62,624 nucleotides of DNA from Thalia democratica (taxonomy: Eukaryota), in contig CBDBBG010000332.1 in assembly GCA_965202585.1 (NCBI GenBank), positions 1-62,624 of the forward strand, written 5' to 3'. Position numbers and translations under genes: made by a program. The notes under the pieces are model-generated. The model was not told where the DNA came from and ran no database searches. It saw nothing but the letters and a program-made list of their open reading frames with translations. Shown piece after piece: positions 2,846 through 18,600 of the stretch. Positions within the stretch are counted from its first letter, which is position 1. Every line of letters begins with the position of its first letter.

Positions 2846-3059
2846 CCGAATACAATCACGCTGACTTCATACCGAGTTATGACGTCACAATTAATTGGCA
2901 AAAAAATCAAAGTCTACGTGTTTTGTTAGTGAACGAAGTAGCGAGATATCGCATAGCAAAATCTATTTAGTCGATCAAAAAACATCCACAAGCACTGAAG
3001 TTTATGTAATGGACAACAGTCCTTGTTCGAGTGATAAAACAGAAGTTTCATGAGTGATT

Positions 3060-3410
3060 GTCTCACCAAGATACGAGCATAACGCTTCCTAGTAGTGCTC
3101 TTTCGCTTTGTTAAAAGAGCTCTCACCCTTGGATATTGAAGTCAACCTTTTGTTGATAAGTTTAGGTACTTTGTTGACAAAATATTGAACATTGACATAT
3201 GTTGCTTAGAATTTTGGTGCTTTGTATGGTACATAAGTGTAATTGCGAAGGTCTAGCTCTACATCTAAACAATTCCTTCTTATCAGAAGTCTATAGTTAT
3301 TTTTAAGTCAAATATAACGAGCACGTTTTCAAGTCTTTTTGAAAGTCGCTCTAGAATTGGATCTGACTTACTTACTACGATCGCTAAGTCATCTTTATAT
3401 CATCTCTATA
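3060..3410 (-). mobile_element. Degenerate Penelope-like element (PLE) reverse transcriptase fragment
   Basis: Minus-strand translation across stops and frameshifts: YRDD/YKDDLAIVV...ERLSKRLENVLVIFDLKITID...CLDVELDLRNYTYVPYKAP...VPKLINKRLTSISKGESSFNKAKEHY*EAL. This follows the PLE RT pattern YRDDGL...LKIT...FLDVxLDL...YxPYRKP...INKRLSxIS..FNKAKxxYxEAL. Confidence 0.8.
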
Positions 3411-3945
3411 TATATATAAGTCATCTATGTTTTTAGATAAAAAAACAATTAGTCAGATAAAACATTATTACTTTATATCATAAAAAGTTTCTTTTGTTAC
3501 TTCAGTAAAGTTTTAGACTTTAAACTGAAGTAGCTTATTGTTTAGAATAAGTGAGATTCTGTTTGATAAAAACAACAAATTTTATCAAAACATTTTGTTG
3601 GTAAAAATATTATCTACTAATAACGATGAAAACAACTTGTTTTTAGTAATTTTAACTTTAAGAATTAAATTCTTACATTTAAAATTATCACACTTAAACA
3701 TAAAGTTTTAACAAAAAATTTAAGAAAAAAATTGAGATATGTGTATCTGTTTTTGTGATATTTGTGTTAGTATTTAGTTTTAAATTTGAATTTTTTACTT
3801 ATCATTTTTGTTAGGTAAAGAAATAAAATTTGATTTAAAGTCAGATCTTATTGTGTTTTACCTGTTTTAAATTAGTTTTTGAAGTCTTTAAATAAGGTCA
3901 GTTGATTGAAAAACACCTAGTTTCATAACTAGTTCTCGCGACTGT

Positions 3946-3988
3946 ACCTGTTTGACGAGTCCTAATTAGGACGAAACCGGTCGTAGGT
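3946..3988 (+). ncRNA. Minimal type I hammerhead ribozyme, variant core (UUGACGA)
   Basis: ACCTGT-TTGACGA-GTCC taatta GGAC-GAAA-CCGG-TC-GTAGGT. Stem I has 2 G-U pairs, stem II is 4 bp, stem III is palindromic (ACCGGU), and the GUC cleavage triplet ends at 3982. C3 is replaced by U. Confidence 0.7.
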
Positions 3989-5087
3989 TGCCTCGGATGC
4001 TGTTGTTGTTGATCGACTGGTAAAATTCAATATTATTTAGTTTACAAAGGTAACAACCGTAATAAACCGAAACAACTATTGTGCTAAACGAAGTTTATAA
4101 AATAATTTTATAAAACTTTTTATTTTAATTTTATTAAATAGTATAAAAAAAAAAAACTTTTTTTTTTAATTTTTGTTCATTGAAAAAAATTGTTTAAAAA
4201 TAATAAAGATTAGATAGCTTTTAATAAAAACTAAATTTGACAAGTAAAACGTATAAACGTTTGTTCACACTTTAAGAAAAGTTGCTTTAAAATAAACTTT
4301 TAAACTATAGCTGCTTAATTGTGTGAGTTTTAAGAAGGAAGTGGAGATCAAAGTTTAAATAATTAAAATATTTTTAAATGTAAAATTTGTTTACTATTGC
4401 TTTGTATCAAGTAGAACAGCAAGTGTTGTACTATGCATTTATTTTTAGTTCTACACTTATTTTTTAGCATATTGTTATTTAAAAAACTGTTATGTTTAGA
4501 ATGTTTTACAAGAGTTTGGAAGTAATTTAAAATAAAACGATCGACATAATACTTATGTTAGCAGTGAATATAAGTTAGAGTAAACTTTAATCTTTTTTTT
4601 TTGTTTAATACGAGCAGCTTATACAACAAATTTTTGATTAATAGTTAAAACTAATTTTATCTAACTAGCTTAATGAATATTATTGTAAATTATTTGTACT
4701 TTTTCTCAGAAAGTGTAAATATTTTTAAAGTTATTTTGAATAGATTAAATCAATTTGATTAGTACATTTCAATAGAAAACATTTTGTAAACCAATAAGTT
4801 TGTTGGTTTTAAGCTTGATATATGAAAAAAGACATAATTTTTAACTTTTAAAACAGTTTAGTTACTAATTACATATTAGAGTTTTCAAACGAGCTTGAAA
4901 TTGTTACTTGTCAAAAGTTAGTCTATCTAAGAAGCACTGAATTCTTTTACTTTTTAATGAAATATCTCAAAAAGCATGAAGAAGTAATTTACATCATGCC
5001 ATTTTTCTTAATAGCATCAGCAACTGAACAAGTTTAAACTGTCTAACACACTCTTACAGCTTAAATAACGAAGGAGAATTTTTAGAA

Positions 5088-15666: not shown

Positions 15667-18600
15667 ATGAACAAACTTTTCTGGGCAACCTTTATTTTGA
15701 TGGTTTTCCTATGTGCTGGAGACGAATCAAATTCTAATGGTTCACCTTCCAATGGTGAAAATGGAAGTTCACCTTCCGGTGGTGAAAATGGAAGTTCACC
15801 TTCCGGTGGTGAAAATGGGAGTTCACCTTCCGGTGGTGAAAATGGAAGTTCACCTTCCGGTGGTGAAAATGGAAGTTCACCTTCCGGTGATCCTGAAAGT
15901 GGCGACAGTGGTGAGGCAAACTCAAATGCATCCGCAGGTGCGACTTAAAAATACAGATATGAATACTCTCACTTTGCTATTGTTCATTGAACGATAAAAA
16001 AAAGGGCATGATAAATTTTGTCTAAGTACCTGGTGTGCAAAGAAATCTTTAGGTTATCGAGTCGTACACCACATGCTTATAAAGTTTTTTACGAGCCATT
16101 ACACATATTTTTTGTTATAATTTAAATATTTAAATCTTTAATAATAAACAATCAGTAAAACGAAAAAAAAGAGAGAAAATAAAACTAAACGAAAGTTAAC
16201 TGAACTTTGTGTTTAGTAATGTACTATGAATCTTGTTTGGTAAAATACGTACTAAAAAATCTATATAACACTTTAAGTTGACTTTAAAAAGTAAATAAAC
16301 AACACTTATAACTAACGTTAGAATACTTGAATTATAGGTTACAACTTCTTTAAAGAAAGTAAAATGTAACACGCTGAAACTTTTTCACGAAACTTTTTCT
16401 TTTTAAGTGTTTTTGTTAAAAAGGTAATTTTTATTTACTTAATAATTTAACTTAAACAGTAAAAGCAATTTTACATTAGAATAGTTAAAAAAGATAAAAA
16501 ACTAAAATACTAAAAATCTTAAATATTTTTCTGCTCTTAAAAAAACTCTGCAGTCTTAAAAAATTTTTAAAGTATAATATAAGGTTGATATATTTAAAAG
16601 TATGTAAAAGTTAAACTAGCTGATTACGAGACTTTATACATAACAATTAAAACAAACGCTATTTAGATAAACGAGGATTTCCAAATATTCTAAACACTTT
16701 TTTTAACTAATAGAATCCTAAAAGTGTTGAAACGAAAACATAAATTTTTAAGCAAATATAAATTTAACACAGATGATGAAGAAGAAGAACAGTTATCAGT
16801 GTGCAAAAATAATGGAGTGTACAATAAAAGAAAATGTGTTTGTTTAGAAGGATTTAGTGGGCAGTTTTGCGAAATAAGTTCGTAAAACTTTTAGTTTTAT
16901 GTGTTATTACTGACGAGTCAAATTTTTGCAGTATTTTTTTTTAATAAGCTGATTAACCTAAGTCCCTTTTCATTAAATTATAGTTCAGCAAAAAGTATGT
17001 AGTAATAACTTATTTCAGCGTGACGTAATGGCTTACTCAAAAAACAAAATTTTAATTTTTTTAAAACAAAATTTATAAACGTTTTATTTTTTATTTACCA
17101 GGTGATAAGATAAAATGTAAAGAAGATAAAAAAAATCCTTGCAAAAACGATGCGACTTGCATTGACTGGGCAGTTGTGAAATCGACAGAAAGTTTTGACG
17201 TAAAAAGTCTGTTGTACAAGCAGAACAGAATAGTAAAGAACCAAACAATGTGCATTTGCAAGCCGGGATTTAAAGGAAAATATTGTCGACATGGTATGTG
17301 TCTTTTCATGTTGTAAGGATAAAGTATCAAACAAAAAAAGATTAAAAATAATCATTTCATTAATTATATTAAAAAAAGGGTTGATCATGCCAATTCGATC
17401 ATCAGACCACAAGTTTCGGTAGACTGAGACCGGTTTCGTCCTTATAAGGACTCATCAGTCAGTCACAACCGAAAAACCTGTAGTCGTCAATCTACAAACG
17501 GTTTATCATGCTTTCGCATGAAGCAAACAGGTTTTTCGGTTGTGACTGACTGATGAGTCCTAATAAGGACGAAACCGGTCTCAGTCTACCGAAACTTGTG
17601 GTCTGATGATCGAATTGGCATGATCAACCCTTTTGTTAAATTTGAGCTTGTCTCACGGCAAACGAAAGTCCGGACTTGTTTTGCAGACTTTCGCCGATTT
17701 TGTTGATTAATTATATTAATTGATAATTTTAGAAAATTTTTGTACACAATCGAAAACTAGTACTTACTAAATTACTTAATAAATTAATAAAAAAACAGTT
17801 TCTTTCTAACTGCTAAATTACTTACTAAATCAAAAACAAACAGGCCACTTTTATGTTATTAGCTAAATCAGTTTTATTAAGAAAAATCATAAACTCATCA
17901 ATGAAATATTAACAAGTTGCTTTTAAATGTTCATTATTTATTAGTTTACAATAGTATTAAACAAAGCAAGAACTTAAAGATTCACGTTTATAAAAGTTAG
18001 CAGTTTTGCTTGTGTTTAAAACAATTATAAAAAAAAAAAAGCTTCTTAAAGCATCATGTTTGTTTAACAACCTAAAATAGTTATATTTAGCTATAAAGTA
18101 TTGTTATTGAAAAAAAAATAGGCTTATTGTAATTATTTAAAAGTAAATTTAAAAAAAAAGACAGAGTATTTATAAACAAAACAGTTTCAAGTTTTTATCT
18201 GAACACACTAAAACAATAATTTCAATAAATGATATGTTCAAAACTTAAACAGATTGTAATTCGTGTGCTTATAACAAGGAATGTTATTTTAACAGCCAGA
18301 AGGGCTTCTTAAATGGAAATCCCGTGAAAAGATCGAGACATTATAATTGCCACAAACTTAAAATTCTTTCTTACGGTTTTTAGTTTTAGTAGTTGTTTGT
18401 AACACTAAAAATCTTACACAATCTATTACAGATTAAAGTTTGTTATAAAGACAGTATGTTTGTTTATATAAAAAGCTGGTTTGTATTAGATTAAATAGCT
18501 GATTTACTCATGCATTGCTACTTCTTGAAACATTTAGTTTTAATTTATGCAATAGTTTGTTAAAAAATATATTAATTTAACTTAAGCTCTGCCTAACATT

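Follow-up and report, generated by a model that had tools for sequence, protein, structure and literature searches.

Two hammerhead ribozymes placed back to back on opposite strands are found in an intronic insertion at positions 17359-17719 of a 62,624-nt stretch of the Thalia democratica genome (contig CBDBBG010000332.1 of assembly GCA_965202585.1; this whole stretch is hereafter called the window). An earlier note on this DNA had interpreted the insertion as a small non-autonomous element mobilised by a Penelope-like element (PLE) and characterized by an inverted architecture, which raises the question of whether such an arrangement represents a new kind of element or the trace left by a known one. 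Our analyses suggest that the inserted element very probably arose as the minimal product of a single Penelope-type retrotransposition, its template being a 328-nt non-coding repeat with a hammerhead (an animal retrozyme of the type without long terminal repeats, non-LTR retrozyme), and that its back-to-back shape appears to be the usual scar of a PLE insertion and not the mark of a new kind of element.

Anatomy of the insertion and its empty site

The inserted element is 333 bp long and lies between two copies of a 14-bp direct repeat, ATTAATTATATTAA, at 17359-17372 and 17706-17719. Its two inverted arms (17369-17481 and 17527-17639) are 113 nt each, 98% complementary and 45 nt apart, and a 70-nt tail to the right of the right arm (17636-17705) holds a hairpin at 17663-17693. 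The two intact hammerheads, the 113-bp inverted repeat, the tail hairpin and the 14-bp repeat had all been described in the earlier note, and all of them are confirmed here. The components are listed below, with unit positions referring to a reference unit (L031:3744-4071) from the window's own 802-Mb assembly, which was the genome searched.

17359-17372, no strand: left copy of the 14-bp target-site duplication (TSD), ATTAATTATATTAA (direct repeat; empty-site contigs)
17373-17529, minus strand: inverted 5'-truncated copy of the 328-nt unit, positions 281-328 then 1-109 (BLAST tiling)
17406-17476, minus strand: type I hammerhead with loop II UUAUAA (Rfam HH9; motif scan)
17482-17526, minus strand: spacer between the arms, part of the minus copy, unit 281-328 (arm search, unit tiling)
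17527-17705, plus strand: 5'-truncated unit copy, positions 1-179 (98.9% identity to the array unit; terminus set by the TSD)
17532-17602, plus strand: type I hammerhead, sense to the host pre-mRNA (Rfam HH9; motif scan)
17636-17705, plus strand: 70-nt one-sided tail, unit 110-179 (difference between short and long termini; fold)
17706-17719, no strand: right copy of the 14-bp TSD (direct repeat; empty-site contigs)

Raw tiling of the window copy gives minus-oriented unit 1-113 and 281-328, followed by plus-oriented unit 1-182, with a head-to-head junction at 17527-17529 where the two copies overlap by 3 nt. The minus copy is 97.3% and 97.9% identical to the array unit, and its 3' end, at the left edge of the element, is referred to as the "short" terminus; the 3' end of the plus copy is the "long" terminus. 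The 45-nt spacer exists because the minus copy extends further in the 5' direction than the plus copy. On this tiling, the window copy is best described as two 5'-truncated pieces of the 328-nt unit, joined head-to-head and ending at approximately 109 and 179.

Contigs from three public runs (X1, X2, and X3; derived from two samples and labelled as two organisms) were compared with the window over 16900-18200. They join 17358 directly to 17706, skipping 347 bases (333 + 14), and at this joint 14 letters fit both sides, which corresponds to an empty site with one copy of the TSD. Such an exact empty site indicates a true, non-fixed insertion with a 14-bp TSD, and thus proves the earlier suggestion that the direct repeat is a TSD. 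The insertion is young, polymorphic and non-fixed. In the flank (17128-17358, 231 nt), the empty-site contig differs from the window by six substitutions and two indels (about 3%), implying that it comes from another haplotype or individual. This divergence of the empty-site haplotype (~3%) also indicates either very high heterozygosity or a closely related taxon.

The two hammerhead ribozymes

Both ribozymes match the Rfam family Hammerhead_HH9 (RF02275) over the full model length, at 17532-17602 on the plus strand (38.8 bits, E 1.9e-8) and at 17476-17406 on the minus strand (35.6 bits, E 2.1e-7). These matches were found by an E-value scan. A default Rfam scan of the whole window at gathering thresholds returned no match because both scores are lower than the HH9 gathering score of 52 bits, a shortfall that is due to the near absence of helix III (5 model positions deleted). 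The hammerheads are thus recognized on both strands by E-value, whereas the gathering threshold of this type I hammerhead model (clan CL00010) is not reached (38.8 and 35.6 versus 52 bits).

Direct reading and a motif scan reveal an intact CUGAUGA...GAAA core in both arms, with G10.1-C11.1 and C17. All conserved core positions (C3-A9, G12-A14, A15.1-U16.1, H17, and G10.1-C11.1) are present and are invariant in 20 variants. Helix II is formed by GUCC/GGAC and helix I by GACUGA/UCAGUC, the latter extended by a bulged distal stem, while helix III is reduced to A15.1-U16.1 closing a palindromic CCGG. The ribozymes of the two arms face outward, one per strand, and their predicted cleavage sites are 17580/17581 on the plus strand and 17428/17427 on the minus strand. 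A pattern of the ribozyme core with 25 specified bases was found 966 + 958 times in the genome (~1,900) versus 0 + 0 for a reversed control, and these hammerheads are therefore not chance occurrences.

A sister family with a 327-nt unit has an identical ribozyme core and only about 55% identity elsewhere. Its helix I (UCCUGC/GUAGGA) differs from that of the 328-nt family by compensatory changes: two helix I pairs are changed on both sides between the two families, and the sixth pair likewise when compared by eye. In the alignment, 97% of the cells of helices I and II are paired, and the covariation score is 0.267 versus 0.116 for shuffled alignments (0/500), although this effectively represents one evolutionary event between the two families.

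In canonical metazoan type I hammerheads, helix I has 6 bp, helix II 4 bp, and helix III only 1-2 bp with a small palindromic loop; such ribozymes show weak activity alone but are active as a dimer of two nearby copies (PMC4209133). Judged by its helices, the window ribozyme is of this canonical form, which is typical of retrozymes and satellites, and not the minimal hammerhead ribozyme (min-HHR) lacking helix III that is found in the pseudo-long terminal repeats (pLTRs) of PLEs. The previous assignment to this minimal PLE type is not sustained, since the ribozyme has the canonical metazoan form with a 1-2-bp helix III.

A tandem retrozyme family as the source

Bases 155-333 of the element match direct tandem arrays with a 328-bp period on many chromosomes at 97-99% identity, and the reverse complement of bases 2-157 likewise matches 328-bp-period arrays at 97-99%. 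The 328-nt unit is non-coding (the longest open frame in a trimer has 68 codons), and its G+C content is 43.6% versus 25.6% in the window. The monomer RNA running from cleavage site to cleavage site is predicted to fold compactly with its ends paired (z -4.8). The family thus has the attributes of retrozymes, namely direct tandem repeats of 150-450 bp, one type I hammerhead per unit, no open reading frame (ORF) and low G+C content; its arrays have a period of 328 and up to 6 full units a side, the window copy itself being sub-monomeric. TSDs of 8-18 bp overall (14 bp in the window) exceed the 4 bp of plant retrozymes. Taken together, the element is an ordinary, minimal and young member of an abundant retrozyme family.

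Contigs assembled from public runs also lie on the 328-nt family. Of the family's words, 41-66% are found in five marine metatranscriptome runs, where DNA carry-over is possible, and 59-70% in runs labelled with three further organisms. Family 31-mers are also present in marine and fish-gut metagenomes (queries: window 17100-18000 and L031:3744-4399). This distribution points to an abundant marine animal, probably a planktonic one, as the source. In the array L031:3416-5564, two variants show a period of three units: 255G/T reads T,G,T,T,G,T along the array, and 89T>C gives 89C in units 4 and 7. This periodicity suggests either a trimeric template RNA or a later higher-order duplication of 984 bp. 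Elsewhere in the window, a decayed copy of the 327-nt sister family is found at 3933-4015 on the plus strand (87% over 84 nt); its core now reads UUGACGAG (C3>U), and helix I has kept its pairing.

Recurrent insertion plan across the genome

To place the window copy among its relatives, 25 further TSD-bounded insertions of the two families were tiled; one pair proved to be a duplicate and two were plain arrays in one orientation. The inverted plan with 3' ends outward was observed in the window and in about 23-24 other insertions from the two sister families, minus-oriented copies being followed by plus-oriented copies. In the 328-nt family (family 1), both ends fit the plan in 15 insertions (window included): the short end maps to unit ~105-109 (range 99-124, apart from a single case at 77) and the long end to ~179-183 (range 176-185), with TSDs of 10-18 bp, mostly 13. 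The sister family shows the same plan in 8 independent insertions, with ends at ~105-124 (~110) and, in six of them, at ~160-170 (~164). The long end, which carries the tail, is on the left in about half of the insertions and on the right in the others, and 0-6 full units are present per side. Several insertions are close to the window copy in size (L062, 274 bp; L068, 310 bp; L076, 319 bp; L070, 379 bp). In the first 48 Mb of contig 1, core pairs in divergent (-,+) arrangement numbered 16, of which 13 were independent, and convergent pairs were absent.

In these tilings the outer ends are fixed, whereas the place of the inner junction within the unit changes from one insertion to the next, with an overlap of 2-8 nt or a filler of 6-17 nt. 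Such diversity of junctions between fixed outer ends implies that the inversion is made anew at each integration. In addition, private variants are found on both halves of the same insertion, including 4A>G in the window, 285T>A in L032, 296A>T in L036, and 294C>T and 324C>A in L038; L069 (many variants) and L070 provide further cases. The two halves of an insertion thus seem to derive from a single template.

A different explanation is that the window copy belongs to a distinct non-autonomous family with a heritable inverted hammerhead pair, which is transcribed and retrotransposed as a whole. About 20 loci in the genome align to the whole 333 bp, and four loci on contig 1 have one junction in common, both of which would fit such a family. 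However, the full-length alignments are approximate (82-95% only) and tiling resolves them into a different inner junction per locus, whereas the halves of the window copy are closer to direct arrays (97-99%) than the whole is to any of the inverted copies (82-95%). The four same-junction pairs on contig 1 are copies made by segmental duplication, with flanks 92% identical over 2.4 kb and no individual TSDs, and an RNA consisting of a 113-bp hairpin would serve poorly as a template for reverse transcriptase (RT). The junction diversity among the tiled loci and the segmental-duplication origin of the same-junction copies led us to reject the inverted unit as the transposing unit, and a heritable inverted family is extremely improbable. 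The duplicated segment itself contains an older inverted retrozyme insertion and has been copied at least four times (contig 1 near 7.203, 7.212, 8.506, and 8.850 Mb); two of its copies (L058 and L059) are 92% identical over 2.4 kb.

These results also separate what stands in the initial interpretation from what does not. A non-coding, retrotransposed element with Penelope-like anatomy is supported, but the inversion is neither defining nor novel, because the source is a direct-tandem 328-nt repeat and the junctions vary from one insertion to another. The copies are essentially ordinary fragments of a known element type, so that the claim of novelty has to be abandoned.

Resident Penelope-like elements and a proposed model of integration

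A search of the genome for GIY-YIG domains (PF01541) yielded 69 matches. The resident canonical PLEs have a C-terminal GIY-YIG domain and open frames of up to about 900 codons. Three of the resident loci are head-to-head palindromes with arms of 1.6-2.3 kb that are 99-100% identical, each with a one-sided tail of 64-70 nt and a TSD of 13-16 bp:

L053:3972-8825, contig 5: PLE palindrome, arm 2347 nt
L055:4095-7535, contig 1: PLE palindrome, arm 1639 nt
L054:4104-8084, contig 2: PLE palindrome, arm 1574 nt

The tail and TSD lengths of the resident PLEs match those of retrozyme family 1. The three palindromes are very recent insertions without a hammerhead, and two of them have the same 70-nt spacer.

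PLE insertions have been described as partial tandems, often with an inverted 5'-truncated copy beside the upstream pLTR (PMC8557442, Fig. 2 and text), and with a "tail" of 30-40 bp at one end only (PMC8557442). In experiments with a purified PLE protein, both target strands were cut and extended, and reverse transcription started at two internal RNA sites, the tail being the sequence between them (PMC11167929). Both structural signatures are present in the retrozyme insertions, i.e., an inverted 5'-truncated copy adjoining the main copy with 3' ends outward, and a one-sided tail bounded by two discrete termini.

The structure of the copy, its family ties, the repeated positions of the ends, the empty site and the private variants on both halves were established here, and a model for the origin of the window copy may be proposed that follows published PLE biochemistry; the enzyme, the sequence of events and the absence of cleavage are inferred. 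A PLE enzyme with RT and GIY-YIG domains would cut both target strands 14 bp apart, and the two 3'-OH ends would prime complementary DNA (cDNA) on a single retrozyme RNA, at internal unit positions ~109 and ~179. Each cDNA might then run for less than one unit toward the 5' end of the RNA, and a template switch with a 3-nt overlap would join the two cDNAs head-to-head. This would leave a 14-bp TSD around a pair of inverted arms whose 3' ends point outward, with a tail of 70 nt on one side only.

It could be argued that the inversion arose by snap-back (self-primed) second-strand synthesis, by palindrome formation at the DNA level or as a fold-back artefact of assembly, and not by priming at two ends. 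The private variants common to both arms would agree with this, as would the resident PLE palindromes with 100% identical arms and, in two cases, the same loop-like 70-nt spacer. However, snap-back synthesis would duplicate the tail at both ends and extend into the flanks, whereas the insertions repeatedly have one arm ending at a defined internal position (~109) and are bordered by clean TSDs. An assembly artefact would lack the exact empty allele with one TSD copy that is seen in independent runs, and a purified PLE is reported to extend both strands (PMC11167929). We therefore regard such an origin as very improbable.

Several observations weigh against Penelope-type retrotransposition as the origin of the window copy, or against details of the model. 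Hammerheads are absent from 18 PLE loci searched with Rfam and two motif scans, one of which included min-HHR geometry, and the examined PLE family has no significant similarity to the retrozyme unit or its 3' region by BLASTN or by Smith-Waterman comparison with shuffles. No autonomous PLE with this hammerhead or a similar 3' end was found in the one abundant family examined. At 70 nt (some 55 nt in the sister family), the retrozyme tail exceeds the 30-40 bp that the literature gives as typical. The filled allele is supported by the assembly only, because short-read contigs break within the repeat, and unequal crossing-over could have shortened an originally longer insertion.

If this abundant, hammerhead-less PLE family is the mobiliser, its recognition of the retrozyme RNA would be structural and not sequence-based, and retrozyme insertions would offer a large natural record of dual-strand priming by PLEs; we put this forward tentatively, as it seems rather doubtful at present. 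A candidate decayed Penelope RT within the window (2850-3400, minus strand), next to the decayed sister-family copy at 3933-4015, was rejected, as its five stop-free pieces gave no Pfam match at E<=1 and the region has no tblastn or tblastx similarity to the resident PLE; one piece reads YKDDLAIVV.

Host gene and predicted behaviour of the window copy

The element starts 79 nt into the intron that follows this exon:

17110-17293, plus strand: host exon, EGF-like module, ending at the 5' splice site G/GTATGT (translation, ORF list)

The translation of the exon has an EGF-like end (...CICKPGFKGKYCRH) and stops at 17293, before GTATGT. A first host exon at 15667-15948 on the plus strand encodes a signal peptide followed by five GENGSSPSG repeats, and a second EGF-like exon lies at ~16780-16880 on the plus strand between it and 17110-17293. 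With a signal-peptide exon and an EGF exon upstream of 17110-17293, the placement of the element in intron 3 by the earlier note is consistent with the exons observed (15667-, ~16780-16880, and 17110-17293).

The whole element is predicted to fold into a single 113-bp hairpin (-231.7 kcal/mol, z -26.9), and the isolated right half can take a hammerhead-compatible fold in the same type of prediction. Because the ribozymes point outward, the antisense arm is transcribed first in either direction. A nascent ribozyme would thus emerge beside its perfect complement and should zip into the 113-bp hairpin. Moreover, its helix III (A-U plus CCGG) would need a second ribozyme on the same strand to form an active dimer, and the window copy has none. 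It had been proposed that transcripts might choose between self-cleavage and a long double-stranded RNA (dsRNA) hairpin. The long hairpin is supported by the fold, but the choice is probably one-sided, with the antisense arm coming first and no same-strand partner being available. The ribozymes of the window copy are most likely passengers, with a hairpin expected to form in preference to cleavage, and the sole plausible activity of the locus would be the production of long intronic dsRNA.

We also considered whether the element might have been domesticated as an intronic ribozyme or hairpin with a regulatory role in the host EGF-repeat gene, comparable to amniote HH9/HH10 or to a hairpin locus feeding small interfering RNA or ADAR. 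The plus-strand hammerhead is sense to the pre-mRNA and lies 79 nt past the 5' splice site, its best Rfam match is HH9, and a perfect long hairpin is plausible as a Dicer or ADAR substrate. However, a precise empty site in other individuals indicates that the insertion is neither fixed nor conserved, which argues against a conserved host function; the sequence is 97-99% identical to a currently abundant mobile family, and the predicted hairpin would sequester the ribozyme, whose dimer-type helix III has no partner. Domestication is therefore highly improbable, and at the host locus the insertion is probably a neutral intronic copy of a known repeat class.

Comparison with known systems

Retrozymes have been proposed to depend on PLEs (PMC7761336), and a 2026 preprint (10.64898/2026.07.22.740005) bases its case for PLE dependence on pLTR homology and co-occurrence in Xenopus. 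Evidence of these two kinds had so far been the ground for connecting animal retrozymes with PLEs, and inverted halves or tails are not discussed in two retrozyme papers (PMC7229834 and 10.64898/2026.07.22.740005). The retrozyme insertions described here bear scars of PLE integration (inverted half, one-sided tail, shared template and long TSDs) that match the two RT start sites seen in vitro, and thus provide independent structural support for the link. Perfect hairpins with opposed ribozymes are a routine product of PLE-type integration within genes, and annotators and ribozyme hunters should treat them as insertion artefacts and not as new ribozyme architectures. If a resident PLE is indeed the mobiliser, each such insertion in a transcribed intron would create a long hairpin RNA against its own family.

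Compared with animal non-LTR retrozymes (Cervera & de la Pena 2020, PMC7229834; Li, Clavereau & Pollet 2026, 10.64898/2026.07.22.740005), the source family is alike in being a non-coding direct tandem repeat with one type I hammerhead per unit, in having TSDs much longer than 4 bp, and in having a self-paired monomer RNA that brings its ends together. The window copy differs from them in that it contains less than one unit and one ribozyme per strand, and for this reason it cannot release a monomer or a circle. With regard to PLE insertions (PMC8557442, PMC11167929), the retrozyme insertions are similar in the inverted 5'-truncated copy, the two 3' termini, the partial tandems and the variable TSDs, and the tail, as defined by the two discrete termini, may be on either side; they differ in having no ORF and a tail of 70 nt (55 nt in the sister family).

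At the level of the ribozyme itself, newt satellite 2, Schistosoma Sm-alpha and amniote HH9 (PMC4209133; Forster et al. 1988 as cited there) are canonical dimer-type hammerheads, with which the window ribozyme shares a 6-bp helix I with a UAC bulge side, an A-rich hexaloop on a 4-bp helix II (GUCC/GGAC), and a helix III of only 1-2 bp whose loop is the palindrome CCGG. Amniote HH9 is conserved at its locus in RECK, whereas the window ribozyme is not conserved at this locus and scores 38.8 bits against the HH9 gathering threshold of 52. The min-HHRs of PLE pLTRs (PMC4209133; Lunse et al. 2017 cited in PMC7761336) resemble it in their dimer logic and Penelope-type mobility, but their helix III is wholly absent, while the window ribozyme keeps the canonical form.

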